Under the pieces are notes generated by a model. It saw only the letters and a list, made by a program, of their open reading frames with translations, did no database searches and was not told where the DNA came from. A program made the position numbers and the translations under genes. Shown piece by piece: positions 11,927-55,823 of a stretch of DNA of 64,000 bases; within the stretch, counting starts at the first letter, position 1; each line of letters starts with the position of its first letter. Source of the stretch: Lepidodermella squamata (lineage: Eukaryota; Animalia; Gastrotricha); contig JBLDXI010000036.1 in assembly GCA_047495785.1 (NCBI GenBank), positions 1,277,592-1,341,591 of the forward strand. Reading direction: 5' to 3'.

Positions 11927-12300
11927 TCAACGGTTATACACCTTGAGCGGCTTTGAGGCTACGTGGACGTAAATGAAGGTATTTTGCGGCAGCGCTGTCT
12001 TCGCGCGGGGGCAGGGTTGGAAATAGCGGCACGTTTTGCCAACATATTGAATGGCGGCACAACTGCTGGCAGAACAGCTCGAGAGGCAAAATTTGATCGA
12101 TGACTGTTGGGCTTCTTTCACCGGCTTTTCCTGGCATGCGATGCTGCTCCGCTCGTAGCTCGTAGCCAATACAATTCGATGCCCATTCCACTGCGAGCAA
12201 ACAAAAATAATTCAAGAATTGTTGTAGTAGGCATTACAACTCGAGACTGTGTAGCATGTATAGCAGCGAAGCAGGATATGACTGCGATCAGGAAAATGCT
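11927..12300 (-). pseudogene. Secreted single PAN/Apple-like protein, copy A (pseudogene)
   Basis: Six-Cys exon 2 (ACQEKP..CLSSCSASSCAAIQY..TCRYFQPC). Three lesions: ATG deleted, donor GTAAGT changed to CACAGT (12251-12246), and a 7-bp duplication (12152-12165) causing a frameshift relative to copy F. Confidence 0.85.
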
Positions 12301-12813
12301 AATGGGCTGTTAGCGTTACGAGCACTGAAAACGGGTTCGCGAACGATCTCAGCTGTCGCGATCTCGGACTGAGGCGACCATCATCGCCAACATAGGAAAA
12401 TTGAATAACAAGTCTAGCCGATTGGTAAATAAGCACCCTCAACTGATGGGCCCCAAGTAGCGGCGGTATTCAACATGTAAACGGTGAGCTGAATTTTTCG
12501 CAAAAATTCTGATATAAGAGGTTTATTATACATATTTATCTGTGATCTTCAATTACATTTTTGGATTGCAAGGTAATTGAAAAATGATATGAAGATAGCG
12601 AATGAACTTCGATCAATAGAACTGAAGTTAGTCGGAAGGTTTGGCTCTGTCAGCCAGAAACTACTCGTATTGAAATCATGGTTATCAGATTTGATATTAG
12701 GTTTTCATGAGATGTTGGATGATGAAGTTTGTTATCAACGTAAAACTTGAATTTAGCTTCTCGATCATCGATATCAACGTAAACTTTGGACAGGTTTCTC
12801 GCCAGTTGTTTAT

Positions 12814-14744
12814 TCAAATCAAATTCGTCCATCGATCACGAAGCGTGTCATACATAGGATCAACAGGGAAGTCATCAAAAGCACATTCATCCCGTTTTTC
12901 ATACAGCGACATAAACCGCCGACCCGGTACAAGGCTCATGCGAGCAGGCGAAATGCCAAAACCACTAAAGCTGAACACCAGCCGTTGCATTTTCGTTAGA
13001 AACAGCCAATCAACGTAGGTCTTCGCTCCATTCTGCCAGTTTCCATCTTGATTTTCACCTGAAATCATTGAAATTTTGTCGATATGACTCGGCTCCATAT
13101 TCACCCTGAGTAGCTTCACGACTTTAAAATCGCTGTTCAAAAATACCGAAGTAAAATTTGATTGAAATGCAGACCAAGCGTTGTTATCGTCGGTCGTAAC
13201 GAAAACAGTGTATTTTGTCGTTTGATTGACAGCATCCGAGTCGATTAGCCGCTTAGTTTCGTCGACAAAGCACTTGACGTAGTTGGGCTTGAACACATTG
13301 AAGCCGTCAACAGCTACGAATTAGAGAAAAACATTTGAAAACACAAAACATTTGAAAGAGCTCGAACTCGAGGTTTCAAAAGTAGTTGGGTCAGATTCCA
13401 ATACTAAGACCTATAAATTACCTTTTAGATAAATAGCCTTTTGTTAAGGTAAACATTGGTTGCTATGGAAGCTTTCTGTTGCCACGCAAAGGTCTAAGGT
13501 GAAGCCGTGAAAAGTTCTCAAGTTACGGAGCAAAAAAGAAAGCTAGGATCTGAGATCTAACGATTCAAATACCAGCTATTGGAACACTATGGCTAATAGG
13601 TTAGCCTTTCCTAAAAGATCCTGTTTGACAGGTCAAAGCGGTAAGAGATTTGTTTTCAAGGTACTGTTGATAAGGTCAACAAAACTTACTATAAACACGA
13701 ATTTGAACGCCAATTTTCTGTGAATTCTTCCAGAATTCGTGGCCAATCGATCTTGAGATGACATTGTCGAACAGCCGTTGAAGCTTTTGCTTAGGTCTCG
13801 AGAACAGCACACGCAAAGCCGCAGCTATTGTCGCTCGATGGTCAATATCACCATATTTGAAAATACTCGGCATAACAGTCATCAATCGATCCATAAAATA
13901 TTTGTTATGAAACAACGCGTCTAGGCCGATGTATCGATTTAGCATGACATTCAAGTTAGGAACATCGTGAAGAGCTGGATAGAAATCTGGCTCTTCAATA
14001 GTTTCGATCAAAGGTTCAGACGGAACTTCATCACTGTGCAGCAGCCATTCTGAAGCAGCTTGTTCCGCTTGACTGATTTCCGCCGGAAAATCGAACCCTG
14101 GGTACAGATTTTTATTCACGTTGAAGAATTTTGAAATATCACCAGGCCCAGGCCAATCGAAGCGGAAAATTCGGTTGGTAGCTACGGCCAGGTAAAACCC
14201 GAAAACGGTCCCGCGAAGCCGGTCGCCCAAGCCGTAACAGCTGACCGATTTGATTTTGCAGTCTTTTGGAGGGTTTTTCCGGTAGACAAAGAACAACTCG
14301 TCGTAGCAGGTGAGATTTTTCGGGAAGTTGCAAGTCGATGTGACAAAGCGTGGTCGGAATCGGGTCAGCTTGGCATAGGAAGCAAATTTTGCAAAGTAAT
14401 TTGTTTGAAGCTCGGATACGACTTCCTCGACGCGCCGATTCAATTCTGGATCTATGGCGTGTTCTTCGTAATTTTCAAACTGGGGCCTTTCATCGAAGCT
14501 CGTTATAACGTCTTCGTCAGAAATATTAAAACTCTGAAAAATGTTCTGCTGAAAATTTCTCGCAAAATGAAAAATAATCTGAAATACTTACAACGGATTG
14601 AGAATCTTTTCCTGCTTGAGAATTGAAATACTTGAGGTCTTCGGGAGCTTTCCATTTCCACAGTGTTAAAATAAGAAAGACACATACGAGGGATAGGGCT
14701 AACTTGGCGGCATTAACCCAGCATTTAGGTCTAAACCTAGTCAT
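12814..14744 (-). CDS. Fucosyltransferase-like glycosyltransferase (alpha-2/alpha-6 FucT superfamily, GT-B), ~498 aa, 3 exons (14744-14592, 14533-13690, 13313-12814)
   Basis: Type II TM anchor; motifs GLGDRLRG, IGVQIR (motif I), VFVTTD (motif II) and DWLFL...SFSGF (motif III); the introns are in frame. Confidence 0.82.
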
Positions 14745-15474
14745 AATTTCATGCGTAAATTTATATCCATCAAAAACATTATTTTAATCATTGAATGAGC
14801 ACGCGTTTTAATCAATTTTTTCCACGCTCAAGTTGTTGTGAAAGCAGTTTGTTACACATTTTTCCATTGAATAATTTAGCTGGGATAATTCAGTGATTTT
14901 TGTTTACGCTGATCGATCAATATTATTGATTGGTTAGCTGTTCATCTGATCACATCTTAATCTGGTCATATCTTAATCTGCTGTTGAAGATGCTGGGATG
15001 AGCACATGGTGCGATCGTCAATCCTGAACATTCCAAGGATCCCAAATTGCTAAATTTTTAAATTTTATCTGATTCTTGTGGGTTTCTGGGTTTTCTTGCA
15101 ACGACTTCTCGAGTTGGAGCTGCGTTACCCCCGATACCTAGGCGCTTGGTAAATAAGCACCCAACGCTGCTCGAATTGACCTGGGTTAGATTCATTCGAA
15201 GATGGGCTAAGATGATGAATTGTTTTCAGAGCCATTTCAGCGATTAGCGATCGGATAGGCAGCAGCCTAGGTACGTGTAACTTTTTCAATGTTTTCAGGG
15301 CCTTGAAATGTTGTTGAAATTTCCGACACCTAATACTTGAAGTACCAAACGCCGAAACTAAAAATAATAATCCACCATCGAGGCGTATTTCCCACCACCT
15401 TGAAACATTTTTTGAGAATAATATAGATCGACATAATGGGATATCATTTTATGTGTTATTCTTTTCGCAGTTGT

Positions 15475-15830
15475 TTACGAGCTCTTTTTGTTCTTGCTTT
15501 GCTGTGGCTTCAATGCGAACAGGTGGGTACCGCTTGGGACAGGAATCTGCGTGGCGGTGCAGGCATTATAAAGGCGGCACGAGTTTGCCGGCCCAACTTC
15601 GAAGGCGGAACAGTTGCCAGTACAGCTTTTGAGACATGTATAAAATCGAGGCCTATTGACAACTTTTGGAGTTTCCTCGCATGTTTTCAACTTTCGCGCG
15701 AAATCACTCAAATTTCCTGCGTGGTAACGTCAGAAATAATGAAGAGCAGGCAAGAAATTCAAGACTTACTAGCATGTACAGCAACGAAGCAGGCTAGAAC
15801 TAAGATCAGAGCAAGACCTAAGGCTTTCAT
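15475..15830 (-). CDS. Secreted single PAN/Apple-like protein, copy B, 100 aa (exons 15830-15770, 15716-15475)
   Basis: Signal MKALGLALILVLACFVAVHA; 53-nt phase-1 intron; C...CxxxC..CxAF....CxLYxxC pattern. Confidence 0.88.
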
Positions 15831-15859
15831 AGTAAGTAAGATACTCGAAGTGGAAGTTA

Positions 15860-15942
15860 AAATTAAGAATTATGAAATGAGCTGGTAGCGCTATGGGCCC
15901 TGAAAACGGGTGCGCAAATGTTAACAGCTGTCGCGAACCTAC
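15860..15942 (-). promoter_or_regulatory. Conserved upstream cassette of the secreted-protein family (copy B)
   Basis: GAGCTGGTAGCGCTATGGGCCCTGAAAACGGG...CAGCTGTCGCGAACC. Homologous blocks lie at 12303-12450, 48460-48725, 45340-45510, 50920-51115 and, in part, 16035-16110. Confidence 0.65.
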
Positions 15943-16034
15943 GGCGAATACTTTACGGCGGATATTAGAGGTTGGTTTTTTTTCATGTTGGCAAGCTAAA
16001 ATGAATGCTGCAAGCGCGAAAGAAGTTGCCTTCC

Positions 16035-16145
16035 GTGTGGATTCACGACAGCCGTAGCGCTACCAGCTCACTTCACCATATTTTATTTGAAATTTGATAT
16101 CAATATCTTACTGGACTGCAGGCTCCAACTGTTTCTACGATAGCC
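16035..16145 (+). pseudogene. Relic promoter and exon 1 of a seventh PAN-family copy, in opposite orientation
   Basis: GATTCACGACAGCC..GTAGCGCTACCAGCTCACTTCA..ATCTTACTG(G)ACTGCAG matches the cassette and the start of exon 1 of copy F; the ATG is lost. Confidence 0.55.
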
Positions 16146-16328
16146 GATACCATTTGATGAATGCTTTCGATGCGCGAAAATCTGGATTCAGTGGCTAGTG
16201 GCTACCAAACTTTCAAATTTCATTCTAGAGTCTCTTTCACGACTTCTGAAAATGCTAGAGAAGAGCCCAAGCGCTCCAAAGCACCAAAGACAGCTCCGGT
16301 GCTTGTTTTCATTTTAATGACTTACATC

Positions 16329-16415
16329 TCTTTGCCTGCCTTCGCCCTCTTCAAAACCGGAAACGGTAATGACGCTTAGTCATGGAGAGGCTAAAAAAAT
16401 AAAACTATTATTATT
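16329..16415 (+). mobile_element. Severely 5'-truncated RTE-like LINE (3' end only)
   Basis: Shares GCCTTCGCCCTCTTCAAAACCGGAAACGGT with the LINE end near 23190; (ATT)n tail; TTACATC duplicated on both sides. Confidence 0.75.
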
Positions 16416-16787
16416 ACATCGAAAATGGGTTTCAGATTTGGAATGAGCGCGAAAAACTGCATTAGACCATGCAATGAACTCGAATTTGAACAAAATGTCG
16501 TAAGCTAAGGTTTTCACTTGTCGCGGCTCATTTTAATAATTCTACGAATTTCATGCGAAGAATTATCGCGCTCCATCTCCCGCAAAAAAGCTTATTACAG
16601 GCCTCGCTAAATTTGGGGATTAGTTCGAAGATGACGTATTTCCCACCACCTTGAAACACTTTTATTTGAGAATAAAATAGATCGATATATTATAGACAAT
16701 AGGATTTTATTATGTTTAATATTCAATGCGAACTTTCACCATTTAGTTTAATGTTAATATTTCACAGTTGCCCGCGTCTTGGATTTG

Positions 16788-17109
16788 TTATACCTTCACG
16801 AAAAGGTCGGTAAATATTTGAACATTGGTCTTGGTGCGGGTGCAGGCTGGATAATGGCGACAGACTCCTTTAAGATCCACGTGGAAGGCGGCGCAACCAG
16901 CATTACAGCTTTGGGAACATGGTAAAAACGACATCCCTCTAACCTCTTTGATAGGCTTCTCCTGACACGTGTAGATGCTCCGCTGGTAATTAGGGAACGC
17001 TGAATGGGAAAAAATCCGACAATGTTAACAAGTGTTATAACTCGAGACTTACCTCGCACAGCAGCGAAAAGATTAGAATTACGATCAGAGAAATAGCTAG
17101 GGTCTGCAT
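16788..17109 (-). pseudogene. Secreted PAN/Apple-like protein, copy C; exon 2 intact, 1-nt deletion in the signal-peptide exon
   Basis: Exon 2 (16999-16788) reads AFPNYQRSIYTCQEKP..CSQSCNAGCAAFHV..VCRHYPAC..*. Exon 1 (17109-17053) is 57 nt and phase 0, whereas the paralogues are phase 1. A T4 run sits where T5 would restore the frame. Confidence 0.8.
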
Positions 17110-19839
17110 AGTTCGGCATAGTTACCCCACAGTTCGGCAGGCCAGAGTGAGAAAAACCCAAAAAATCACAGGGGGTGCCCTTTGGTTTTTCATAAAATTG
17201 TGGCCCGAAGATAGTTCGAGGATTTTACTTCGCGCACTCGAAGCATGGATTCGCCTTTTGCCGTACCGAGGATGTATTTCGTATAGATTTAGGCCGAAAA
17301 CGTTGTAGTACCGTGCAAGCTCGCAGTGGCTTTTTCTGTGCTCATTCCAACCTTATTAGGGTCAAGTCTCGCAAATGCCATTCCCTATCGAAAGCGGGAC
17401 GTAAAAACCCAACATTCGCGATTCGCAACGTAAATCCAACAGAGCTGGAAAACTTGCAAAAATGTCGCACCTGGTGCGTGGGCAATTTTCAGGAAAGTAG
17501 GAAATTTTTAAGGTACATAGTGACGCCAACTTTGCGTGGCCGTTTTCAACCAAGCGGAACGGGATTCTGCGGCAAAATCAATTATTTCTTAATTATTTGC
17601 TGTAAATAAATTAGTTAATGAAAGTTATTATTAATTTCATAAAGAAAATAATTAAATTTAGAGTTTCTATGGCGATTGGGATTGTTTATCGGCTGAAGTA
17701 GTCTCGCGTCGCCTCGCGTTTGCTGGTGCTGAGGCGTCAAGTGGCTAACGTGAGGTGGGTTAAGCTGGACTTGTACGTTTTCTGTTCGTTATCGGCCGAT
17801 TTATCCGTGTTGTAGGTGTACGATCCTACTCCTGAGCATCCTCAAATTGTATAAACAGCCAGCCAAGTTCAGCACGCCTCAATATGCCTTCCTCAATCTT
17901 AAAACTTACAAGTATCTGTGAAACATGCGGTATTGTTACTCAAGAGTAAACGAATTATCCCTTTCAATCTCATCCGTAGTTGAATTGCATCATTGAGATG
18001 GTGAACAAGAAATGATTACGAGTTCTGTTTTGTTCACATCTATTTATTGGCTATGCAAACAGGAATCGACAATCTATAATGCGAATTTAATCGATAATGC
18101 GAAAGATCTCACAGCAAGGTATCGTTCAACTCAGGAACTAAGGAGTCGTAGGTGACATAAATAAAAATGATCTGCCCACCAAGCTTTTTGTACTTTGTAT
18201 TACAAAAAACGAGGAAACAGTGATGGCTAATGGATAAATCGCACGACTCAATACTGTGAAAAACAATCTTCAAGACAGCTGGCTGCACAAAATAATAGAC
18301 TAAATTTGATCAAGTTGGAACGAGGAATTACGAAACCAAAGTAGTGTTAGATAACAAGTGAAATCAGACCAGCCGCCAGCAACTGAGCAACGAGGAGACG
18401 CATTTTTTTTTAACGAATTTCAGACAGACACCTCATGACTGTTATCAACTCCAAATAAAACCCTGCTAATCAACTCTAGTGAATTTCAAAGCAGGTAGAT
18501 GAATGTAATGATGCTGCCAACAAAAAACAGGAATAGATCATCGCACAGAGGAATCCGTAGTTTCGAGTACCAAGAAATAAGCTAAGCATGCCCGTTCACA
18601 AATTTCGCGGAAGAAGAATCGACAAGACGCAGTCCTAAATAAAGAACAATCACGCGAAACTGGTAGGGCATGACGGCGGGTGAAGCAATACCGTATAGAT
18701 GAAATCACTCGAATTTTATGATTTTCAGGCAGAAAATTGTTGACCCAAGTTATTTAAATCAATTGTGAAAATTATAGATCTAATCTTATATCAAAGCAGG
18801 TATTCAAGGTCGCAAACACGGAACAATAGCAAGCTTCAAATACAAAGATAAGACCGGCCATCACTGCAATAGGTATCGGCAGTTGGAAAAACACCAGAGG
18901 AAGCTAAAGTTTTATAATGAACGGATGTTTTCATTCGACGAATGAGTTCCGAAGCGAAGCGCAGGCTGCGTTGAATTTGTTGAGTTACCTCGAAATTTGC
19001 GGCTAATCGACTCACAATCGACTCGCAAATAGATTTCGACAAGGCTGAAACACAAATCAAATTGTAAATTCGATGAAAAAATGAGAAATAAATTAAAAAT
19101 TTGATTGGCAAAATATCAGAATACAAAAAAGTCGATTGGGTGACTAAACAAGAGGGACATCTTTGAACTTGAGAGGATTAACTGAAGAAGATATTTTTTT
19201 CCAAATGAAATTCCCATACATTTTCATTCCCTTAAATTTGCCAGAATTATTCGAAATTTATTCGCAATATGCAAATCAAAGAAATGGAAGAATTTATTTT
19301 TTCTATGCGAATCGTTTCAAGTGAATAAAACTCAAGCGTAACAGCAATTCCTTCGCAATTAAAGTTTTCGAAATTAGTAAATTTAACGATTCCAAGTATC
19401 GATTTTAGAAATCAGTAATTTTCCCGATATCAGCTGTCTTGGAACCTAACATCGATCATTTTTCTACGTAGCTTAGGGCACCATGTAGCTACGATACAAA
19501 AACCCAAGGATCAGGGAGGGCATCAGTATCGATCAAAAAACGAAAACGCCTAAATCGCAAAAAATCTGAAAAATTGAGTACCAGGATGCTTAAATTCAGT
19601 GCTGGATCCTCATTTTTAGTTGTGGAAATATTTGGACCTAATTAGTAATGGTTGAGATACGATGTATTCAAGACGAAAATTACACATCGCCCATTCCTGA
19701 TACCCAAAATACAGGCTATATCCGGAAAGTAGCAACTTGACTAATGTTTAGTCTGACTTGCTTTGGAATCTCTTGAAATGAGTAAAAAATGTCGTGAAAT
19801 CCGAAATAGATGACAAAACCGTGTTCATAGGGCAGGCGT

Positions 19840-21290
19840 CGGTCTTAATTCATAACAAAACAATGCGATTTCATAGCGTTTTTCGAGCGTTTTCAAAAGC
19901 GTTCAGCATTCAAGAAAGTTAGCATTTAGCATTGGAAAAAATATTACTTGGGTAAAATTGACAGCAAATAATGTGACGAGGCATCCGTAAATTCTTCCCG
20001 ATTATTTGACGATTTTATTGACTTTCTGCGCGGGCGGAAAAATGTGAAAAATTGCTACCAAGGGGATCGAAAAACGATTTTTCTATTCACCTGATTTAGA
20101 CCGGATATATTTTATTTGGAGGAGGGCGGTACATTTGAAAAATGGGTAACGAAGCCAGCGAAATGGGATGCCTTCGTCCACGAATTTTTGATACCGGTTA
20201 GATACAATTTTTGGGCCGGCGGAAAAATGTGAAAATTCCTATCTAAGACAGCGGCAGGCCGTGCCTCTACCCGCGGTTTTTCTCAATTTATAAATTCGGA
20301 ATAGTGCATTTTCCTCATTTTGGCGCATTATAGACTTCAGTACCTATTCTCACCGATTTACCGGGGAAACAAATAAGTTCACTGCGAGGAAACCACGACT
20401 AAAGCTCGATCGGAATTAATCGGGAATTATCGGTATATTCAACTTAAGTGAAGTTAATCTGGATTCATCAGATTGTTCCTGCCAAAAAATGCCGGGGCGG
20501 CCTACGGCAATCTATATGAAAATTTCTGGAATATATCGGAGAAAAGTCCGAGAAATTTTTCAGTAACCCTGGAATTTCAAAAATAAAATACCGAATTTTG
20601 CAGAATTTTCATTAAAGCTATCAACGAATAAATTCTGAAATTTAGGGCATGCATGCTGCTGAAATTAGACAAATTATGAGTGTTTTCGATGCAAATGTTT
20701 TGCAAATGGCAACTCAAAGATCCCGAACATTTTTTTTCGATGACAAATGATATTTAATTAATCGGCTGATAATTTTGCCCATCAGGTAAAAATAAGCAAA
20801 TTCTTACCAATTCATCGATGAGGCATGTTGACTAGATCTCGACGTATGATAGAGCCAGCGCCCTCATCAACCAATCATTCAATTGACATTCCTTCATCCC
20901 GAATCCCGAATAACACGCGATCCTCTTTCATGGGTTGCTTGGGCCGGTGGTGGCGCCGGTGGTTGGCGACCCTGGTGCTGTTTTGTCACGCTCGCCGTAG
21001 TCGTGCTGGCGCATTCTGTGGAGGCCACGCTCGCTAATCACTGTGTTGAGCGCGAGAATGTAACACTTTCCAATCGACTCGAAAACTTGAAATGCGGCAT
21101 CTGAAAATAAGAGAAAATAGCTTTGATGACGTGGGTTTTTTCATGATGCAATGTTTGTCGGGAAGTCCGAAGTTCGAGATGCATACGAAAAGATCCATAT
21201 TTTTCCCGAAAAAAACCCGAATTTTGTCCGAATTTTGTAGATGGTGAATAAAAAAGCTTCAACTTGCCTAGAAAAATCAATGGTCTTTCA
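19840..21290. repeat. ~1.3-kb local repeat, copy 1 (copy 2 at ~24690-26030; partial copies at ~21825-23450 and ~27590-28160)
   Basis: Long near-identical blocks, e.g. TTCTTACCAATTCATCGATGAGGCATGTTGACTAGATCTCGACGTATGATAGAGCCAGCGCCCTC at ~20800 and ~25628. Confidence 0.85.
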
Positions 21291-22162
21291 CAGAATTTTG
21301 GTCGGTCATAGAAGGATAGAAAGCCAGGGATATTAAATAGGAAATAGGTGGTAATAATGCGCAGTTACGGTAAAAATGTATCTCTTCACACTTTTCAAAG
21401 CTGGACATATATTTTTGTAAACAAATTTGAAATTGTAATGAGAACTACGAAATCAGACGACGTAACCCCATTTTTTATGCGGAAAAGAGGGTGCAAATTA
21501 TCTGATGAAATTTGGCAGGCACTGATCTTCCAATCGTAATACCGATTTTGGAACGCGAAGGAAATTGCTTTGAATGAGTCAAGAAATCGGAGGGCGACCT
21601 TCGTCAAAGAATTGAACCTCGATGCAAGGCCTTGCCGGCATCTATTCCTGTTTATAGCACGGCATTGAAACACCTTGGAATCCTAGAATCGTCCTTATTC
21701 AAGTCAACACACCTTTCGCCATTTGCTGGAAAATATAGAAAATACCCCAAACCCTATTTTTCACTTGCTACCGGTCAAATAAAAATTAAGTCTATTTTCT
21801 TCGATGCATTAATCAAAAAGGGAATCGGCTGATATTTTTGCCAATCAGATGAAAAAGGAATAAGAAAATTATTACCGATGGCTGGGACATGCTGACTGTA
21901 TCTTGACGCTTGCTATGGGAGCCAGTTCACTCGTCAACCTGTTATTCGATTAGCAATCCTTGTTACCCGCCTAACACGCCTCGAGTTGCTAAGGCTGGTG
22001 GTGGTGCCGGTTGTGGTCGACGCTGGTGTCGCTTTGTCACGCTCGCCGTGTTGACGCATACTACGATGGCTACGCTCGCGCGAGAATGTCCCACTTTCCA
22101 ATCGACTCGACAATTTGAAAAATCATCTGAAAATAAGAAAATAGCTTTAATGACTTGGCTTT

Positions 22163-35400: not shown

Positions 35401-38175
35401 TATTGCGGCTGGACAACAGTTGAAATTCTAACATACCACGCTCCTGGATTCGACCATTTTACTTTAGCTCATAGATCCACGATATTATTTTCGTATTTAT
35501 CTTCTTCGTATTCCGATCCCTTGAAAATAATTATATTTTTTCCAATTTTTTAAGAAATTCAACATTAAAAGTACCATTTGTGGTCGTGGCTGAATAACAC
35601 ACCCAGTATCTTCGGTTTGGTTTCTCTTGCTTTGATTTAGTCTGCCGCGAGTCAAGCGCCTGAAGAGCCGACTGCTCAAGGCATAGATCGTATCAGTCGC
35701 ATCGTATTCTCCTTTTGACTAGCCATTTGAAGTTTGATCGATTAATTCTAAGAAAAAAATGTAAATTATTACTCTAAACATACATGAGATATTAACGCAA
35801 TTTAACCTCACGACTGAATTTCGTAAATAATCATCATACATTTCAAAGCAAGGCGGAAATCAAAATGAAACAAATTTATCATGGCATCTCTTAACAAGTT
35901 TTGTTCATAACATCCCATTCTTCATTCTGTTGCCGGCTTCAAGCGTTAGTTATTTTGCTCGTGATTAGCTAGTGTGAGTTTGGATGGATATCGTTGGCGC
36001 TACCAAATAAGTAACTCGGAAATAATCTGGCTAATGACTCAAACTGATGAAAGAACTAAAGAAAGTTCAGTTGACTTGAAATGAAAGGCGTAAAGTCGGA
36101 TTCTTACTAGTCATTAGTCACCTTAAATGTGCCAGCTTAATTCAGAGTGCTCAAGCAGCGCCACCTCATCCACACTCACCTTTCGTTGAATCACGCCAGC
36201 TCACAAACAGCAGAAGCCAGAAGCATTTCAAGTTTAGATGTTGCCTTACATATTTTCCATCATCCATTCGATCCTGGACTGAGAGGCCCAGAGATGTTAC
36301 AACCCTAGCGGACCGTTATTAGCGGTTATATCTAGAAGTTCAAGATTAAAATAATGCAACACTCGAGACTCCTACCAGCATCAAATGCACATAACACATA
36401 ACGTCCCCGAGTGCATCGACGCCGTAACTTCGGTTTTAGAAAGACAGCAAAGAGACCCTAGGGCAAAATTAGATTGAATTCTTAGACAGAAAAGCATTAA
36501 GAAAGTAAATTCTAGTACTCTCATGCCAAGCCAACATAAACAAGGAGCATCCATTAAACCCCATCTCTAACCTGTGAACTCCAATAGCATCTAAAATGTG
36601 AATCAGAGTAACTCCGCGAGAAATTCCCGAAATTTATGAAAACGAGTGGTGTTCTGGATATAAGGAGTTTCAAGTCACAGCAAAGCGCTCCTAATTCAGA
36701 ACAAAACATGGTCGCTTGCTCATCTTCAAAGTCATGAGTTGCAGAAGAACAGCCAGCAACAAGCCGATCTAACTGATAAATCTGAAAAATATGCTGCTTA
36801 ACCACTCCACTGCCGCCTACAATAGCAAAAATTGATCAAATATACAATGCCGCAACTTAAAATAAGCACTAATACACTGCCAGGCAGCCGAAAGTTAACT
36901 TGACGAGCCCAACCCACGGGCAACACGAACTACTGCCTAACACCAGCCAAAAACCTGAAAATTGCGCGCCAGTTCAGCATTAATAAATTGATGTGAAAAC
37001 CAATACGGAAGCCTTTTTATATTTTTCCGAAGTTTGAAATTATGTTTTCTAGATAATTCGAAGATATGAACCCCTGTTAATTAATAAAATCAGGTCGTTT
37101 CTTAAAAATCAGTCCCCACGCAATGCCGGCGGCACTATGTAGGAAACCTTTCCATATTCTCACGCAAGGCAGCGCCTAGCGAACGACGAGCTGTAGTTGT
37201 AGCCTAGTCACAGTATCGGCAACCACGCGCTGGCTAATGGCTAACGGAGAACGCAGCGGTACTGGGAGTTGAAGAGGCTCAGTTCGTGGAAGATCGGGGT
37301 CGAATTGCCCGATGTCAGGCCATTGCAGCCTAACAGCAAAGGAGCAGCATGAGTCCATGAACGAAATAACAGTAAACCATAAACAACCTGGACGAAGACG
37401 TAGGAGTGCGCGACAGGCGTGCGGGGACTGAGCACACGGCCCGCATAGGTTTTTTTTCCGCACACACAGACGCGAACGGCGACAGTATGGGGGTTCCCTC
37501 CGGCATTAGATATTTGGAATCAGCATGAAAAATTGAGGTAGACCCCCAATTAGCGCGCAATTAGCAGCCAAATTCACGAAGAAATCGACTAATTGTTGAA
37601 TTTAGAAAAGATGAAAAGTTCTGAATGTCGACAATCTATCGGAATTCTCGCTCTCGATGACACTTTCTTTGGCCTTCTTGATTGGCTTGAATACTTCAAT
37701 CCAGCTTGACACTCTCGATTAAGATGACATTTTGACATTTTGAGTGCAACGGATTATAAGAATTGATCATAAGACTAAGATTCTTAATTAGCTTGAAAAT
37801 GAAACACAGCGAAAAATGCAGCCCAATTTTCTCGAGTTCTTGTTCCGTGTTAACGTACTCAGTGGCATTTCCGCCAATCTATTCATAGGAATGGCTTTTT
37901 CCAGGTAGTATAAACAATGCGTGACGCAGATGAACATACAAACAAGTAAAATACGCAGCGACAAAACAAGAAGTTAATAACATGTTATTGGTGCTATATA
38001 TCTGATGAGAGAAGGATATTACGAGCTATCACCAATTCTTTATTGACAGCTGCAAAACGTAACGGACTAGAGGTTTGCCTATAAAACCGAGGCGGCAAAG
38101 CGCTCACAAACAGTATTCGTTTTCGATATTTCTTGATCTCTCACTATCATCATCCACCATCATCCGCAATCGGCA

Positions 38176-38559
38176 ATGCAGTCTAAGGTTGTTTTCTTGC
38201 TAGCTATCGTCGTACTGGCTGTTGCCTGCATTCAGCAAGCGAGCGCCGCACCCAAAACAACCAAGCGCACAATCAGTAATAATGAACTTGTGTGGAGCGA
38301 AAGCTAGATAATTGATATTTTTTCTCATTTCACAGCCAACATGAGCTACTTCACGAAGGAAGACACTTACTGCAAGGGCGAGTATCGTCGCGTGAAGGCA
38401 TGGGGCGATGACGAGTGTGCCAGGGAGTGCAGAATCGACCACGCGGGCTGTGTCGCGTTTTTCTACAATGATTTGATGTGTCTCTTGTACAAGGAATGCG
38501 TACCTGGCGCCAAGGTCAGGGGCACGATCTTCACATACAGGATGATCAAGCAAGGCTGA
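38176..38559 (+). CDS. Secreted single PAN/Apple-like protein, divergent copy D, 107 aa (exons 38176-38275, 38336-38559)
   Basis: Signal MQSKVVFLLAIVVLAVACIQQASA; 60-nt phase-1 intron; YCKG..ECARECRIDHAGCVAFFY..MCLLYKEC; TATAAA at ~38080 and AATAAA at ~38699. Confidence 0.88.
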
Positions 38560-44009: not shown

Positions 44010-44441
44010 TCACATTGTTCCTAAAATAATCAGGAGCAGTTCCCATTGTTCATTTTCGACCATTTTTCGACCTTCTGCTCGGTTCTTTAAATTTAATGAA
44101 AACAACGTTGTTTTTCGGCACCTTGGTGCCCGTTCCGTGCAGGTTTTAAATCTACGGCAAATTTGGGTGGTATTGTATTGGAAGGCTGAGCAGCCTCCAT
44201 CGCCTGAACAGGTTTGCATGCAGACTTGCAGCTTTGCGGCTCTTGTTTCTTTCACCGGCGATTCCTTGCACAAGTAGTGGACCTGCCTGTAACCAGGGTA
44301 GTAAGAATCACCAACTAGAGGAACAATCAAAATAACAAATGTCGAAAGGAATGCATTAAGTTGAGACTTACACTGAGCATTTACAGCAGCGAAGCAGGAT
44401 AGAACTGCGATCAGAGCAACAGCAGTCTGCATAGTCTGCAT
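44010..44441 (-). CDS. Secreted PAN/Apple-like protein, copy E, ~124 aa (exons 44441-44372, 44314-44010)
   Basis: Signal MQTMQTAVALIAVLSCFAAVNA; 57-nt phase-1 intron; LCKESP..VCMQTCSGDGGCSAFQY..ICRRFKTC. It has an extra Cys and a longer tail, and unrelated sequence replaces the upstream cassette. Confidence 0.8.
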   Translation of the reverse strand: MQTMQTAVALIAVLSCFAAVNAQCKSQLNAFLSTFVILIVPLVGDSYYPGYRQVHYLCKESPVKETRAAKLQVCMQTCSGDGGCSAFQYNTTQICRRFKTCTERAPRCRKTTLFSLNLKNRAEGRKMVENEQWELLLIILGTM

Positions 44442-45339
44442 AGTCAATAAGATATTCAAAGTGTAAGGGGGAATATGATATAGACCTCTTGAAGTTGCCG
44501 ATATTTCGAACGAAGCAATTTCAACGAATAGAATGATGAACTAGCGGAAGCATTGTTCAACTCTTGCGTTACTGCATTTTTCATTTTTCGATCAGCCCAG
44601 ACAAATTTGAAGAAATGAAAGCTTCCAAGCTGAAGTCGAACCTGAGAAGATGGCAGAAAAACACAATCGAAAGCATGGTGAGATTATGGATTCTGGAGCT
44701 CCCGAGGATAAACGAATTTCTTCGATTAAGAAAAAGAGCCCAAAATGGCGAGAAAACTTTGGCAATAAGTATATGTGCTGGGAACAAAATGCATTTGCTG
44801 ATTGTTACCAGGCTTCGCAATTCGCATCGGAATAATTCACCCGAATTTGCTGAGCAGACGATTGGTTGTTGCAAACGATTTCTTGGTAGTTACCTCGTTT
44901 CATATGGACGCCGCCATTTACAAAGTCAGTCAAAGAACTTCTCAATTTTGACGCCGGGGTGATAGGAATCATGAATTCATCTAGCCTTTTGAAATGGGGT
45001 AAAATGGACCTCTGAAGCTAAAAAATAGCCAACACGCTCGAAATTTGGGGATGGGTAGCAAAATCTTTAGGATTTTCCACAAAAAGGGTCCAAAGTCTTG
45101 CCTTGCCTTGGCAAAAAGACGGCTTTTCCAGACGTTACTCCGATGTTGGTTGTTGCATTCGGTCCGAATGGTTGTTACATTGTGTAACATGCTGTACCTA
45201 ATTGATTTTCTGGAAACGCTTGTTAATAGTTGCTTTCATTCGTTTTCCATCATTGTTGTGAGGCTGTTAAAAATTCGCTGACTGGCAAAGTCTTCATCCA
45301 TTGCTACAACCCCCTCTACGTCCTCTCACCGTTTTGCTC

Positions 45340-47197: not shown

Positions 47198-48065
47198 TAA
47201 TTCGTGAACTCATGGCCACTCATTGCGCGAAATATGCGTGAAATGAAAGTCTATCTGTTAGGCATGATAACAACAAATTTGATATTCCAGTGAAGACTAG
47301 AAACTCAAAATCATATATAGAGGGATTTTAGAGCTGGAGTCTCAAATTTAGCGCTGGAACTCGCTGAATATTAGGAAGAACATGCTTTGTATGTGGTCGG
47401 CTTCTCTATCAGAATGGCTGTTTACTCAGTTGCTACATCTTTTGTCGATGTTGCTTCGCCATGAATGCAAAATACTATGGAGTAAGAAGCCTGGTGAGAT
47501 AAGGTAGACTATGGAACCGAATTGAATCGCCTCAAAATCGGCTTCTTAGCAGCCCCAGGATTAATGATCGCACAGTGATGCCCATCATTAGTTTGCGATC
47601 TTGAATCAATGAGCTGCTAGGGGTGGTAACAATGTTTTCGCTGTATTTGCAAAGTTACTAAATTTCAGCTAAAAACAACCGAAGCGAGGAAATATTGAGG
47701 ATTTTCCACCAAAAGACGCTCCCATTCGCGAAATAGCTGGATAAATTTTCATCTTTATGTCCGAGCTAGGGAGGGATGATATCCATCCCCTTCTAAAAGT
47801 CGCACATATTATAGTCGGTGCAAGATGCTTCATTTCCTCTCCTCTCCCGATCTCACATCACAAATAAATACGTTCTTTCTTTCCTAATTGATCCCTTGAG
47901 TGGGCCCAGGTAAAAATGTTGGGAACGCCAATCCTGGAATCAGTAAACGAAACGAAAAGCACTTCCCACCACCTTGAAACACTTTTATTTGACAGAAATA
48001 TAGATCGATATATTGTAATTAACGTAATAGGATATAGCTATCAGTATGCTTAATGCTTAATGTTA

Positions 48066-48450
48066 TTAACAGTTATGCTTCCCCGACTTTGTAACTGCCT
48101 TAGGGTAAATGAAGGTATTTTTCGGCAGTGCGGTCTTCGTGCGGGTGCATTTTGCATAATGGTAGCACTCGCCTTTAATCATTTGAATCCCGCCACAACC
48201 CCTTGCAGTGCACAGTTGAAGGCATTGTTGGTTTGTTCCCCTGTTATTTTTACCCTCTTTCACCAAATACGGCTTTTCCTGGCATGCGACGCTGATGCGA
48301 TCGTATCCAATAAAGCCAGAGTCTCCGGATACGCCTGAGTGCGAGAAATAATTAAAATGTTATAGTAGGAATTAAGAATTAAGACTTACATGCATCTACA
48401 GCAGCGAAGCAGGATAGGACTGCGATCATTGAAACAGCTAAGATCTGCAT
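48066..48450 (-). CDS. Secreted PAN/Apple-like protein, copy F, 109 aa (exons 48450-48390, 48334-48066)
   Basis: Signal MQILAVSMIAVLSCFAAVDA; 55-nt phase-1 intron; six core Cys plus a Cys at the predicted mature N-terminus and one at the C-terminus. Confidence 0.88.
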
Positions 48451-48459
48451 AGTCAGTAA

Positions 48460-48725
48460 GATACTCGAAATGAAAGTTGAAATTAAAAGTGATGAAATGA
48501 GCTGGTAGCTCTACGGGCCCTGAAAACGGGTTCGCGAATGATTTCAGCTGTCGCGAACCCAGACAGACGCGATGTTTCACGCACCGTCATCTTAGCTTGC
48601 CAAAATACAAAAAACCAGCTAATCTCTATGCTAAATGAGCAGCAGCGGCGGCGGCGGTTCTCATCATTTTAGAAAAATAGAAGAAAGCCAAGCCGCTTGG
48701 CAAACAAGCACCCTTTACTGAGGGG
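48460..48725 (-). promoter_or_regulatory. Shared upstream cassette (copy F)
   Basis: Perfect dyad GGGTTCGCGA/TCGCGAACCC around CAGCTG (48528-48560); GCAAACA forkhead-like site at ~48700. Confidence 0.65.
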
Positions 48726-50919: not shown

Positions 50920-51115
50920 CTCTCAGTTGACGGTGCTTAAGCTTATTTGCCAAGTGGCTAGACGTGTTTTGTCTTATTTTCTATAAGACTGTACTGCAGC
51001 GCCGTTTTCAGTCAAGTTTCTCGACAGCTGATATCATTCGCGAACCCGTTCTCCGGGCCTGTAGCGCTGCCATCAGCTCACTTCATCAGTTTTCATTTCA
51101 ACTATCACTTCGAGT
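50920..51115 (+). promoter_or_regulatory. Shared upstream cassette in front of peptide precursor gene 2
   Basis: Matches the PAN-gene upstream region through ...TTTCAACT.TCA.TTCGAGT, which is ~12 nt before the ATG in the PAN genes. Confidence 0.65.
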
Positions 51116-51333
51116 TTGTTGCCATATTATTTGCCATAGAAATTGCGGCTTCATCAACGGAAACGACCCGCTACCGATATTCGAAGATATTCTTTTGACT
51201 GGACCTCTCGTCAATAATCTTATTGTGTACAGCAGTCCTATGACAGTCTTCAAGTCTTCAACTCACTAAAATTATTTCGGTTTCAACTAGATTGAACGTT
51301 ACATTGTCGATAATTTTGTGGAATTTCAACATC

Positions 51334-51747
51334 ATGATGAAGCTGGCTCTAATTTTCCTTATAGTGGTAAGATACATAACGCTTCCCGTTTATATCGGTC
51401 ATCAAATAATCATTGCTCTTAAGGCTGCCGTTGCTGAAGCAGATGATGAAGCTGATGATGACATAGGTGCATTTTTAGACTCTAGAACCGTTGGCCAGCC
51501 ATGCAAAACTAAACATGGCCCCGGCGTTTACGTGAATTTGAAGGATCCTGCAACATACTGCAGGATTACTAAATTCTCGTGGAAAGCGCGAGAAGAAACC
51601 GTCTTGCAGGAAGCTTCACGCGGACCAATCGTTGGCCAGCCATGCGCAGTAGGTAAACGTGGCACCGGCATTTACGTGCAGACGCGCCCTCCAATGATCT
51701 GCAGATTACTTCAAAAAGGCCAAAAAGGGCGTGAAGAAACCGCCTGA
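51334..51747 (+). CDS. Secreted precursor of two divergent single-disulfide peptides, 118 aa (exons 51334-51366, 51424-51747)
   Basis: MMKLALIFLIV|AAVAEADDEADDDIGAFLDSR, then TVGQPC-X18-C..SWKAR, spacer EETVLQEASR, then GPIVGQPC-X18-C..KGREETA; same intron position as gene 1. Confidence 0.88.
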   Translation: MMKLALIFLIVVRYITLPVYIGHQIIIALKAAVAEADDEADDDIGAFLDSRTVGQPCKTKHGPGVYVNLKDPATYCRITKFSWKAREETVLQEASRGPIVGQPCAVGKRGTGIYVQTRPPMICRLLQKGQKGREETA

Positions 51748-52446
51748 AAAACGACGAAATAGTGAGATGATGAGATGAGTGGTGCAGTCTAAACTCGATT
51801 GATTGATGAATAAAAATTAGGTATCAATTTCAATAACACAGCGCAGCCACGTTTTACCGAGGCCGAGAAAATCTAACAATAGAGCCCGTAATTTGAATAA
51901 TTGAACGTGAACGGATTTTTCGGCGAATATTGTTCATTTTGGATATAGAAAATATTGGCCCAAAAAGTGTTTCCTCTTGGGCGGGTAATTCGTTTACTCT
52001 ATTGTGAGATTTTCTCGGCTACGGTAAAAAGTGGCTGCGCTATGCAATTTTCTGAAGGTTCTGTTCGTCTTGCCGCGAAAAAACATATTGGCATAAGTCG
52101 CCAGGATATTGATTCCAATTCTTTCGCGCACAAAATTAGGCACTCGTTCGCACCTAGTTTGGAGTTCTGTAGAGTTGACATGCTTCTTTTGGCTATTCCG
52201 GATGTTTCGAACAGCCTTTGAATTTTGCCCACAGAACAACACTTCCATCATCTAAGTATATTCAAACAATTCTTCACACGATTTTGAAGGTTTTATTTGT
52301 GCATTGTAGGATTGAAAAACGTGAATGAACACGGGGGAGTAGATAACGAGTTTTTTAAGCATACTGTACACGAAATTTACAACAAATGGCAAGTAACATG
52401 TATTATGTTGTTTTAGTGGAAAGAAGTAGCTCGGGCAAATTTTACA

Positions 52447-53343
52447 ATGCGCCTTATTATATCCATCGTTTTCCTTTGGCTCGTGTCCGGAGTGGACGCT
52501 GAGGATTTCGAGTGTGGCGCTTATCCGCTTCCTTTTACTCCTAAAAGCAAAGTTAACATTCATGGAGTACAACCAAATGAGTTCCCTTGGCTGGTTCGTC
52601 TGTTTAGATTGGTCTCATATAATCAGAACAGGATACTTGTTAAAGGTCTTGCTGGAGATATATTTTAAAAACGAATTATCTGCCTTTTATTGCGATGCTT
52701 CTCTCATCTCATCGAAGCAATGGCTAATTACGGCAGCTCATCGTGGTCGGAATTACAGAGGAACACCAATTTTGTAAGTTTTCGTTTTTCCTTCTGAGTG
52801 CTGGAATGTTCTGATCTTTCAATATTCGGGATCAAAGCTATGCTGGGACGCCACGACATCAGTCTCTGAACCAGTCACTATCGCCGAATCGCAGATGTGT
52901 TTAGCCTCAGATTATCAGATTATGGGAGCAACGTTTGTTGGACGGATGAAGGAGGTCCACTTATGTGTTCGTTTTCAAGGAGGGCTTATCTGCTTGGCAT
53001 GATTTCAAACGACGGCGAAACGTGTTCGGGGGACATTCCGGGCATCTACAGCAGAGTCTGCAAGGTTCCAGATTGGATTACTGAAAGCACCGATGTTCCA
53101 AGCCAGAGAAGTGCTCCTGATCAGTCATGTTACGTACCGGTCGTTGAAGCACCGCGGTCGTGAGCCGAGTGGACGCGGGTACATTAGCTGATACAGGCGA
53201 AGTTATAAGGCCAAGAACTACCGTGGCGAAAGGAGAGGTCGTAATCGTTAAATGCAACGCAGGTTATAACTATTCCGCTTCTATCAATGCCGCAACCTGC
53301 TTACATCCTTTTCGCCCGGCGATGAATGGAAAATGTAGCCCTA
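52447..53343 (+). pseudogene. Decayed 5' half of a modular protease gene: signal peptide, non-catalytic S1 protease domain, first sushi/CCP domain
   Basis: FPWL|VLLEI (52-nt intron 52594-52645), WLITAAHR, CWTDEGGPLMC, PGIYSRVC. Lesions: acceptor AG changed to GG (~52829), stop plus large deletion (~52867), 8-bp duplication at 52908-52923, frameshift at ~53160. Confidence 0.8.
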
Positions 53344-53680
53344 GTTAGTAAGGTCAAAATGAGCGAAATCTTCTGATGACTCAACTTGTGGAAGTTCCGA
53401 ATCCGTTTCGATTTGTCCACCTGGGAAAGGCTAACTTTCAAACCTTGTGACCTAGCCCAAGCCCAAACACTATCCCTATCAACATCCCTGAGCCTAGCCC
53501 TAACCCTAAACCTAACCCTAACCAAAATCCAACCCCAAACCTAAACCCTAACCCAAGCTAAAACTCTAATGAAACCCGAACCTAAACCCCTACCCTAACC
53601 TTACGCTGAATCCTAACCCTTTTCTAACCCTTACCACTAATTGTTGATTAATGGCCTGTTAATACTGTCATTATTGTTAG

Positions 53681-55823
53681 ACTGCGGCGAGATTCCTGTC
53701 GTAAGTAATGGGTATCTGACGAGCTCGAATATGTCCACATCCTACTTGTCCACGATGACTTTAGTCTGCAATCAAGGCTATCGAGTCGTCGGTCAGGCTA
53801 CCAGCCGATGCCAATCGAACGGCAGTTGGTCTCCGCCTGGCAGCTGTGAAGCTTTAGGTGACATTTTTCATTACGCAGTAATTGCTTAAGCACTAACAAT
53901 GTTCTCAAGTTTGCGGACGACCCCCGGCGATACGAAACGGTGCTGTATCTTCTGGGCTCTCGAGCGTCGGAGCAACGCGAAGTGTATCATGCGATCGAAA
54001 TTACGACCTACAAGGCAATGCGGCGATATCATGCCTCGCAAACTTGACATGGTCTCAGCCTGGTTCTTGCATCTTACGGCAACAAGGACCTGTAAGTTCT
54101 AGCATGAATATCAATGAGAAATTACTCATTGAAATATGTTCCCTATAAGTTTTGAATGCTTTAATCGCATTTATTTAATCGGGAAACCGAATTTAACGAA
54201 TTTAACGGAGAGAATCTTATCGGTAATTTTCGGTATTTTTCGAGGTTTGACTAATTTCTCCGGATTTGTTTTAGTTTCAAGTTTTAGGAATTTTCGGAGT
54301 GTCTACTCTCGCAACAATATTTTTGAATAAGGCCAGGCTTAGGGTTTAGGGTTAGGGATGGGCTCAACAAGCAATATCTGATAAGGACTGTCATTTGGGG
54401 AAAATTCTCGATCTGCCCTCTCTTGTGTGTTGTAACTCTTAAATTGTAAATAGAAAATAAATAAACAATAATCGTTAGATAGGGGTGGCAAATTCCTCTT
54501 TGTAATTGTGCCATTTACCTGGCCTCGGTATGTAAGCACTGTTAACAATTTCGATAGCTAGCAAAATTGGAAAATTCTCGTCCTTTGGCCCTATTTTCAA
54601 GCCTTTATACATTTCTTGGTTGTAAGTAAATTTAACAGCAATTTGGTACGATGAAGTACCATATTGATGATTGATGCGAATTTAAAATTATCTGATTATA
54701 TATCTCTCCACTAATGTTTCATTTTTCATGGCGATCAGCCGTCCGGCGAGCCGTGCATAGTCCCAAGTAGACCGAATTCCTTACTCAAGCTGAAATCAAA
54801 TGGAAGAACTGTCCAGGCTAATTCTCTCCCGACTGGTAGCGTTATAGTCATTGAGTGCCTGGCAGGATTTGCTTTCACGATGAGACAGTCTCGCTCAGAA
54901 AGCACTTGTCAGGCGGATGGCGAATGGAGCTACGAGCTGCCGAGATGCGGAAGAGCAGAAGGTGAGGGCAAATCTTAGCATTTCAGCTTCTACTAATCTT
55001 GTGAATTCAAGCCAACTACAGCGCTTGCGGAATAGGACTGGCAGCGAGAGTTATGGGCGGAGCTTACGCTGAACCAGGCGAACTTCCATGGATGGCTAGA
55101 CTTGAAATAACGTATACCGGTCAAAGCCAGCCCGTATACTGCGGCGCTTCTCTCATCTCCCCATCATGGCTTCTATCCGCAGCTCATTGCTTGACTGTAA
55201 ATAGCAATGGCTTAGTAGCGATAATTGCGGAAATTGGGCGGACTAATTTTTCTAGCGAAAGTGAAGCAAGCCAATATGTTCGGCGCGTATCGAGAAACTT
55301 CACCATCCATCCTAATTACAGCAAACTGGATAACTACAACTTCGACTTTGCCCTGATTAAGCTGGAGCCGCCTGTTATCTTGAAACCAACCGCTCGCTTA
55401 ATCTGCCTGCCCGACTCGTCAATGTGCGACGAAACGTATTCGAGGGATAACCAACGCGTCGACAGTTGCGTTCAAGTATCAGCGGCTGGCTGGGGTACGA
55501 CAGAACGGGGCGAGCGCTTGTCGACTACGTTGAAAAAAGTCAACTTGACAATGGCATCGGCTGAGTCTTGCGAAATTTTAGGGGGCTACGACGGGATAAC
55601 AGATGCTCAAATGTGTGCTGGGGCTGAAGTCAGCAAAGTCGATACATGCACCGGCGACTCTGGCGGGCCTTTGATGTGCAGGCGAGACGGCAATGGGCCT
55701 TATCATCAAATTGGAATTGTTTCTTTTGGCCACTCGTGCGGCGTGGCCAATTCGCCTGGAATATATTCCAGGGTTTGCCGAGTCGTAGATTGGATCAGAG
55801 GATACATATCACCCAAAACCTAG
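53681..55823 (+). CDS. Intact 3' half of the same gene: three sushi/CCP domains + trypsin-type S1 serine protease (exons 53681-53857, 53910-54091, 54739-54961, 55012-55823)
   Basis: CCP C..C..C..W..C patterns; zymogen site CG..AR|VMGG; triad SAAHC, DFALIK, GDSGGP; Asp at the S1 pocket (DTCTGDS). All introns are GT-AG and in phase. No intact start or signal peptide is visible. Confidence 0.8.

Follow-up and report, generated by a model that had tools for sequence, protein, structure and literature searches.

What unites small secreted-protein genes that lie side by side, resemble one another at their ends and differ in much of what they encode? The question is raised by a locus of the gastrotrich Lepidodermella squamata (assembly GCA_047495785.1, contig JBLDXI010000036.1, here C36; other contigs are numbered likewise). 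The window, as we call the whole stretch of 64,000 nucleotides that was analysed (positions 1,277,592 to 1,341,591), is the last 64 kb of this contig, and the genome searched comprises 121 Mb in 151 contigs; for the published assembly 157 contigs, a total of 122 Mb and a heterozygosity of 3% are given (PMC11660948). Over 44 kb of the window, six mini-genes for PAN/apple-like domains (A to F), a relic, two peptide genes (P1 and P2) and a sushi-domain protease gene are interleaved, and a preliminary description proposed that all of them, several bearing the same upstream cassette, are effectors co-expressed in one gland cell type for venom, mucus or defence. We consider it probable that the window holds one locus of a superfamily of small secreted proteins that is specific to its lineage and built on a reusable module, and that those genes which carry the promoter core of this module are co-secreted by one secretory cell type.

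Six-frame reading located the six PAN mini-genes where the preliminary description had placed them. They share a common plan: a signal-peptide exon encoding about 20 hydrophobic residues with an A-x-A-like end (for example MQILAVSMIAVLSCFAAVDA), a phase-1 GTAAGT..YAG intron of 52-57 nucleotides (about 55, a length typical of the short introns of the L. squamata genome), and a single exon of 64-100 residues in which six cysteines are invariant in the alignment. The intron behind the signal exon is in phase 1 wherever its donor could be read, in genes B, D, E and F of the window and likewise at loci on C29, C30 and C54 and at 1084, 1056, 1088 and 647 kb of C36. Gene F (47934..48580, minus strand) serves as the reference copy, with its core at 48451-48571, ATG at 48450, signal exon at 48390-48450, phase-1 intron at 48335-48389, second exon at 48069-48334 and a 3' block with AATAAAAGTGTTTCAAGGTGGTGGGAA at 47963-47989; its mature product has eight cysteines, seven from the open reading frame (ORF) of exon 2 and one from the codon split at the junction. 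Gene B (15389..15952, minus strand) is arranged in the same way, with the core at about 15876-15952, ATG at 15830, signal exon at 15770-15830, phase-1 intron at 15717-15769, six-cysteine exon at 15478-15716 and 3' block at 15389-15438. In the PAN genes AATAAAAGTGTTTCAAGGTGGTGGGAA lies about 80 nucleotides past the stop codon; the 3' block, which is specific to the family, has AATAAA and then GTGTTTCAAGGTGGTGGGAA.

Alignment of the 5' regions, of eight copies in the window and then of 14 genome-wide, delimits a core of about 75 nucleotides with sharp edges and the consensus CGACAGCTGATATCATTCGCGAACCCGTTTTCA.GGCTCGTAGCGCTACYAGCTCATTTCATCAC. The core is TATA-less and presents an E-box flanked by TCGCGA half-sites and then an initiator-like TCATTTC; downstream of it lie about 45 less conserved nucleotides, followed by the ATG and the signal exon. 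Alignments together with model and motif searches find this cassette at A, B, F, P1 and P2 and, in decayed form, at the relic, in agreement with the preliminary description. In P1, P2 and a third peptide gene, P3, the core is 84-88% identical to that of F, whereas the ATG and signal exon that once followed it are decayed and their place is taken by a new signal exon some 300 nucleotides further downstream. The core also holds a 10-bp inverted repeat, GGGTTCGCGA..TCGCGAACCC, around a CAGCTG E-box (48539-48571 of the window, minus strand, and the equivalent sites), which could be a palindromic factor site or a hairpin; we do not claim a conserved hairpin, as the 14 copies offer two compensatory changes (in P1 and in the C30 copy) and many broken pairs.

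The cassette is rare in the genome. BLAST found it in 24 places, a sequence-only covariance model (Infernal, R1) gave 38 matches in 121 Mb, and a 20-nucleotide core motif gave 19 matches against one for the reversed control, and 18 of the 19 fell on loci where the module was already known; the 3' motif gave 10 matches against three for its control, nine of the 10 at known family loci. Nearly all cassette matches lie on C36 and C42, with single ones on C29, C30, C54 and C81, and since C36 and C42 would be two haplotypes, the haploid count comes to about 20 loci. Each copy inspected heads a gene with an ATG, a signal peptide and a phase-1 GTAAGT donor, which is not the picture of a genome-wide repeat unrelated to secreted-protein genes, the outcome that the preliminary description had set against its own proposal. 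The cargo of the module is varied: three PAN domains at C36:1088074 and at C36:647698, two on C30, a PAN domain, a peptide unit and a second PAN domain on C29, peptide repeats in P1 to P3, and YRNDYQ-type and other small proteins elsewhere. A metagenome scan with the promoter core gave no matches.

The window is rich in retroelements, and a cassette gene has been triplicated with a long interspersed nuclear element (LINE) at 993-1009 kb of C36, so the cassette might be conceived as a mobile-element fragment or dispersed repeat beside chance ORFs, with mini-genes that are not real. We find this very improbable given the small number of matches in the genome, the constant orientation of the cassette towards ATG, signal peptide and GTAAGT donor, and a cargo that keeps six invariant cysteines, a high-confidence PAN fold and a ratio of non-synonymous to synonymous substitution rates (dN/dS) below 1. 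No transposase or reverse-transcriptase ORF was seen inside the cassette, and no terminal repeats were noticed, no search having been aimed at these or at target-site duplications. The triplicated segment, at C36:993303-1009260, is a tandem array of a 5394-bp unit in which a cassette gene (signal peptide and YRNDYQ-type protein) is joined to a non-LTR (long terminal repeat) retrotransposon with a reverse-transcriptase ORF of 763 amino acids; a fourth, diverged cassette lies nearby.

The identity of the cargo as PAN/apple domains is sound, as several lines of evidence converge on it. Profile searches and fold predictions were run on single exons. In Pfam, E alone passes the PAN_1 cut-off (24.5 against 21.4 bits), the other five copies falling individually below it; a search of the PDB with the family profile returned PAN/apple proteins in all of its top five places, MIC5, MIC4, SML-2 and HGF among them. 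A HMMER profile search gave 722 matches among 1.84 billion representative proteins, and of the five matches checked four carry Pfam PAN_1 or PAN_4, the top match (P0001, a repetitive protein) being without PAN. Ten domains follow the pattern C-x(15-17)-C-x3-C-x(4-6)-C-x(9-11)-C-x5-C, in which all six cysteines are invariant, including those of the C-x3-C helix motif; apple domains have the disulfide connectivity 1-6, 2-5, 3-4. AlphaFold2 models the PAN core with a predicted local distance difference test (pLDDT) score of 86-92 and in the order strand-strand-strand-helix-strand x4, as befits the PAN/apple fold of a single alpha-helix against an antiparallel beta-sheet; the top Foldseek matches of this model are nearly all PAN/apple, and VIA fold comparison gave Z scores of 10.3 for the plasminogen PAN domain, 8.8 for the HGF N-domain, 7.8 for the factor XI apple domain, 7.3 for leech LAPP and 7.2 for SML-2. 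Profile and structure searches, of the kind suggested in the preliminary description, uphold the assignment.

Stand-alone PAN proteins such as the leech anti-platelet protein LAPP (PDB ID: 1i8n) and the apicomplexan microneme lectins SML-2, MIC4 and MIC5 resemble the products of the window in being small, secreted and made of a single PAN/apple domain, and LAPP superposes on the PAN model with a root-mean-square deviation of 2.5 over 74 residues at Z 7.3. Identity to LAPP and the microneme lectins is nonetheless only 15-22%, the plasminogen and HGF N-domains are the better fold matches (Z 10.3-8.8), and orthology is not implied. A word-indexed search of 5.8 billion proteins with the PAN profile found no relatives in a database without close kin of the animal, and the same search with P1 found none; a control search of this database with a cytochrome P450 of the window reached rotifer proteins only, at 31-33% identity, which would suit a poorly sampled spiralian. 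Blank searches of this database hence say nothing on novelty or expression. The genome itself holds many other PAN architectures.

The two peptide genes place a different cargo under the same core. In P1 (45413..46528, plus strand) the promoter core at 45413-45532 is followed by a signal exon at 45788-45820, an intron at 45821-45872, an exon at 45873-46409 with four units of 132 nucleotides (44 amino acids) and AATAAA at 46523; in P2 (51007..51815, plus strand) the core at 51007-51130 is followed by a signal exon at 51334-51366, an intron at 51367-51423, an exon at 51424-51747 with two units and AATAAA at about 51810. The short signal exons are predicted to begin MIKLALLIVVM.. in P1 and MMKLALIFLIV.. 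in P2, and the introns measure 52-57 nucleotides. Each unit has the form (T/I)VGQPC-x18-C, in P1 TVGQPC-x18-C, and behind it comes an acidic linker, for example REDAVLEEASREK. The third peptide gene, P3, lies at 12 kb of C36, with one further match at 982 kb of C42. AlphaFold predicts a three-stranded sheet for the unit (pLDDT 80-88) with a disordered acidic linker, and searches of the PDB by sequence and by structure gave no meaningful matches for it.

The preliminary description was right to see two repeat-peptide genes here and mistaken in calling them unrelated: P1 and P2 are homologous, and a paralogue on C29 carries a PAN domain and one peptide unit in a single exon, followed by a second PAN exon, so that the peptide genes are not independent of the PAN family. 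In the core tree the cores of the peptide genes group with those of F and B at 55-67% bootstrap, with the core of the C29 fusion gene on a short branch nearby, which hints that the peptide genes may derive from a local PAN or PAN-plus-unit gene. Spider toxins include acidic-linker polyprotein precursors with processing quadruplet motifs (PQM) or their inverted form (iPQM). P1 is like these in its near-identical cationic disulfide-loop units split by Arg-bounded acidic linkers (..RGR|EDAVLEEASR|EK..); unlike them, the family carries the same unit on C29 behind a PAN domain without linkers, and cleavage of P1 is only predicted. On the strength of the C29 arrangement, an uncleaved multi-domain protein would be as possible as released peptides.

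The core, the signal exon and the cargo have changed at different rates. Among the PAN genes of the window identity is 72-86% in the signal exon, 66-77% in the intron and 59-71% in the PAN exon, and across 14 paralogues pairwise identity averages 0.71 for the core, 0.49 for the 5' untranslated region (5'UTR) and 0.41 for the signal exon, which bears out the earlier observation that coding regions diverge while the flanks stay alignable. On a maximum-likelihood tree the cores of F and B are separated by a distance of 0.24 and those of F and C29 by 0.20, against dN of 0.94 and dS of 1.10 for exon 2 of F and B; taken together, the F-B and F-C29 PAN exons span dN 0.84-1.06 and dS 1.10-1.33 (1.18-1.33 for F-C29). 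The core changes 4-5x more slowly than the non-synonymous sites of the cargo, also for copies on different contigs, and we read this slow change as purifying selection on a proximal promoter. A low-copy cassette, signal-peptide genes at the inspected copies and a core far more conserved than its cargo make a shared promoter, and hence co-regulation, the most economical reading, and we regard co-regulation of the core-bearing genes as plausible.

Similarity of the modules could also result from concerted evolution, through conversion and unequal crossing-over, or from recent duplication, with no regulatory constraint and no requirement for co-expression. Most members stand in tandem or on one chromosome, the repeats of P1 are visibly homogenised within the gene, and long identical tracts between the haplotypes indicate conversion or loss of heterozygosity at this locus, all of which would suit this account. 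Such a process is nevertheless unlikely to explain the core, whose identity is similar on different contigs (C29, C30 and C54) and ends sharply at the edge of the block of about 75 nucleotides, a boundary that conversion tracts are not expected to share in 14 loci; P1, P2 and P3, moreover, keep the core without a neighbouring old signal exon.

The haplotype comparison also shows how members are gained and lost. Positions 905000-944656 of C42 are collinear with 1360-55876 of the window at 90-99% identity, without gene A and without the block between 17.5 and 37.1 kb, and C36 and C42 look like two deeply diverged haplotypes with tracts of conversion or loss of heterozygosity: divergence is a mosaic from 0 to more than 20%, with 14600-17515 identical and 9500-11000 above 20%, and synonymous divergence at the protease is about 0.12. 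The alleles of F differ by two synonymous changes and those of D by one difference, while on C42 the signal exon of E is frameshifted and one of its Cys codons is changed to Trp. We rejected the haplotype identity of B and C as evidence of constraint, since the whole tract of 14.6-17.5 kb is identical.

Gene A (11827..12377, minus strand; core 12301-12377, 3' block 11827-11904) has an open exon-2 ORF at 11930-12190, but a deletion of about 56 nucleotides has removed its 5'UTR and ATG and its intron donor is not GT, so that it is apparently degenerate; it is also specific to one haplotype, having no counterpart on C42. The relic (15973..16145, plus strand) is the decayed solo 5' module foreseen in the preliminary description, head-to-head with B, in which the part with the E-box has been deleted, the ATG lost, and no cargo exon follows. 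With A and the relic decayed, A missing from the other haplotype and the C42 allele of E broken, the birth-and-death evolution that had been supposed is visible within this locus. The status of C (16611..17119, minus strand; ATG 17109, exon 1 to 17053, six-cysteine ORF 16791-16982, 3' block with AATAAA 16611-16688) is uncertain: its signal exon is 4 nucleotides shorter than that of F, which puts the first acceptor (exon from 16999) out of frame, and a second, weaker-looking acceptor (exon from 16982) would restore the frame. Gene D (38080..38559, plus strand) has an ATG at 38176, a signal exon to 38275, a phase-1 intron at 38276-38335 and a six-cysteine exon at 38336-38556; in place of the cassette it has its own promoter, with TATAAAA at 38080, 96 nucleotides before the ATG. 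Gene E (44010..44470, minus strand) has its ATG at 44441, exon 1 to 44372, a phase-1 intron at 44315-44371 and exon 2 at 44013-44314; like C, it retains the 5'UTR and the signal exon but lacks the promoter core. In the window B, D, E and F look intact.

From these data we propose a model for the growth of the family. The module consists of the promoter core, a 5'UTR of about 45 nucleotides, the signal exon and the phase-1 intron of about 55 nucleotides, to which PAN genes add the 3' block, and between its ends it carries one to three PAN domains, a PAN domain with a C-x18-C unit, repeats of this unit as in P1-P3, or other small proteins. The family would have grown by tandem duplication on one chromosome, its cargo diverging fast or being exchanged through the phase-1 intron and some copies dying, as A, the relic and the E allele of C42 appear to have done, while purifying selection would have kept the core as the driver of the same cell-type-specific transcription. 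Transcription probably starts at the initiator-like TCATTTC, near CTCATTTC, about 45-50 nucleotides upstream of the ATG, which would make the 5'UTR about 50 nucleotides long. B, F, P1 and P2, all with the core, and about 15 further such genes genome-wide would then be co-secreted by one secretory cell type.

That the same module heads PAN genes, genes for peptides alone and a fusion of the two suggests cargo exchange. More tentatively, the module may act as a natural 'secretion vector', in which promoter, signal exon and terminator form a frame, the phase-1 intron accepts unrelated coding exons and new products of one secretory cell type arise by cargo exchange; we hold this as a possibility rather than an expectation. 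Such a design may be a general way in which L. squamata builds its secretome.

As to function, our best guess is that the family supplies lectin-like binding proteins and cationic disulfide-loop peptides for surface, mucus or defence; of the roles offered in the preliminary description, venom is the one to which nothing in our results specifically points. The nematode apical extracellular matrix proteins LET-653, NOAH and FBN-1 use PAN domains in matrix assembly, and PAN/apple domains are in general protein- or carbohydrate-binding matrix modules, as these Caenorhabditis elegans proteins illustrate. The products of the locus might by the same token be structural proteins of the cuticle or apical extracellular matrix, of scales or egg shell, made by ordinary epidermal cells rather than gland effectors, and members with two or three PAN domains, the many other PAN architectures of the genome and dN/dS values below 1 would all be compatible with such a role. 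Two features fit interaction or defence better, however: the same promoter also heads cationic C-x18-C repeat peptides, and turnover is rapid, with presence/absence and pseudogene alleles. The lack of a ZP or other matrix-polymerising domain further reduces the appeal of a structural role, which we rate as a rather doubtful alternative that deserves to be kept in mind. In the reading that we prefer, products of one secretory cell type, that cell type could be glandular or epidermal.

Several observations weigh against co-secretion under a shared promoter. Half of the PAN genes in the window (C, D and E, three of six) lack the core, and the local cluster is to that extent not uniformly cassette-driven. 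Ectopic gene conversion could keep the 5' module alike, as has been proposed for the SSSGP genes of the Hessian fly (PMC2955719), and the identity that B and C show from one haplotype to the other is largely regional and hence no evidence of gene-specific constraint. The dN/dS comparison of the mature regions advocated in the preliminary description gave paralogue ratios (omega) of 0.34-0.88 (Nei-Gojobori, pairwise; dS from 0.7 to saturation), and values below 1 with dS near or at saturation do not prove diversifying selection. The comparisons between paralogues and haplotypes all lie within one genome, that of L. squamata, and the splice sites, the start of transcription and the cleavage of signal peptides are predicted from sequence. 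The sole sequencing run covering the stretch has an even depth of about 100x, the same over genes and spacers, with no intron-skipping joints at the predicted introns; such evenness marks it as a run of DNA, which says nothing on expression.

The protease locus (52417..55823, plus strand) lies at the edge of the cluster, and core alignment and motif searches found no trace of the cassette there. Its first part (52417-53160) encodes a signal peptide followed by a degenerate protease-like domain that has TAAHR, and DEGGP in place of GDSGGP; this part may be either a protease-homologue gene of its own or a non-catalytic N-terminal domain of the protease. Four or more sushi-like exons (53148-53345, 53641-53886, 53897-54145 and 54715-54975, plus strand; Pfam Sushi E-values of 1.8e-10 and 2.1e-9 for the domains at 53897-54145 and 54715-54975) precede the trypsin domain (55005-55820, plus strand; Pfam Trypsin 3.8e-50), which has an activation site R|VMGG and contains His57/Asp102/Ser195 and Asp189/Gly216/Gly226, the motifs SAAHC, DFALIKL and GDSGGP, and D-T-C before GDSGGP. 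The triad with Asp189/Gly216/Gly226 predicts a trypsin-like enzyme with Arg or Lys at P1; the sushi and S1 domains of the Arg-specific sushi protease envisaged earlier are confirmed, and specificity for Arg only does not follow from these residues. The allelic ratio of non-synonymous to synonymous polymorphism (pN/pS) of 0.10 in the protease domain indicates a real, constrained gene; the corresponding ratios are 0.74 for P1 and 1.53 for P2, both on very few changes.

Serine proteases of the MASP, C1r and Limulus factor C type combine complement control protein (CCP, or sushi) domains with a trypsin-like domain. Like these, the window protease has sushi repeats directly before a catalytic S1 domain whose triad is intact and which has Asp189; unlike them, it shows no CUB or EGF domain, has the extra degenerate protease-like domain upstream and has no link to the cassette family. 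A co-expressed 44-kb unit that includes the protease, as first proposed, finds no backing in the cassette, as C, D, E and the protease are without the core, and it is by adjacency that the protease is tied to such a unit.

Genes unrelated to the family are interspersed between its members, and a retroelement-rich block (17516-37138), which lies outside the family and is absent from C42, occupies 19.6 kb of the 44 kb. The block contains non-LTR reverse-transcriptase-like ORFs (21907-23166) and direct repeats of 4.8 kb (about 20.0-21.2 against 24.8-26.0 kb, other copies lying near 22.0 and 27.8 kb); Pfam searches with the ORFs at 21907-23166 and with several ORFs outside the block gave no matches. 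A second reverse-transcriptase fragment (41464-41889) adjoins a stretch (39057-41005) that is also absent from C42. Between PAN genes A and B an ORF of 303 amino acids (13679-14587, minus strand), kept in C42 and unrelated to the family, has a faint fucosyltransferase-like match. Upstream of the cluster lie a cytochrome P450 exon (6465-7475, plus strand), also unrelated to the family, and a class-C G-protein-coupled-receptor-like gene (8514-10981, minus strand) with an ANF_receptor ORF at 9701-10981 and a 7tm_3 ORF at 8514-9623, which lies in the most divergent part between the haplotypes. No known RNAs emerged when the window was scanned with Rfam and for tRNAs.

Molecular work on gastrotrichs has hardly begun. 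A conserved block of about 75 nucleotides heading some 20 secreted-protein genes is a candidate cell-type-specific enhancer or promoter and the genes behind it are candidate secretory-cell markers; if our reading is true, they would give a first molecular handle on the gland or epidermal secretory cells of these animals. The claim should not be inflated, as the pattern of conserved ends around a changing secreted part is already known and role and expression are here only predicted.

Conotoxins form toxin superfamilies that are defined by a conserved signal sequence. Our family resembles conotoxin-type superfamilies in its conserved signal region, its fast-changing mature region on a cysteine framework and its birth-and-death evolution; it differs from them in that conservation reaches discrete promoter and 3' blocks and that the folds of the cargo differ within one module family. 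The closest described system is that of the SSSGP-1 families of the Hessian fly (Mayetiola destructor), clusters of small two-exon genes for secreted salivary gland proteins; the mature region of these genes has diversified, while conservation extends over promoter, UTRs, signal exon and intron (Chen et al., 2010; PMC2955719). The gastrotrich locus is like SSSGP-1 in its tandem and inverted two-exon clusters, whose non-coding parts and signal exon are more conserved than the mature exon. In contrast to SSSGP-1, its cargo consists of recognisable PAN/apple domains or swapped units, omega above 1 is not shown, and the animal is a free-living gastrotrich rather than a plant parasite; identity between copies is also much lower than in SSSGP-1, the family being older. 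Set beside these systems, the locus offers a clear case, outside arthropods and molluscs, of secreted gene families in which non-coding sequence evolves more slowly than the coding sequence it accompanies.

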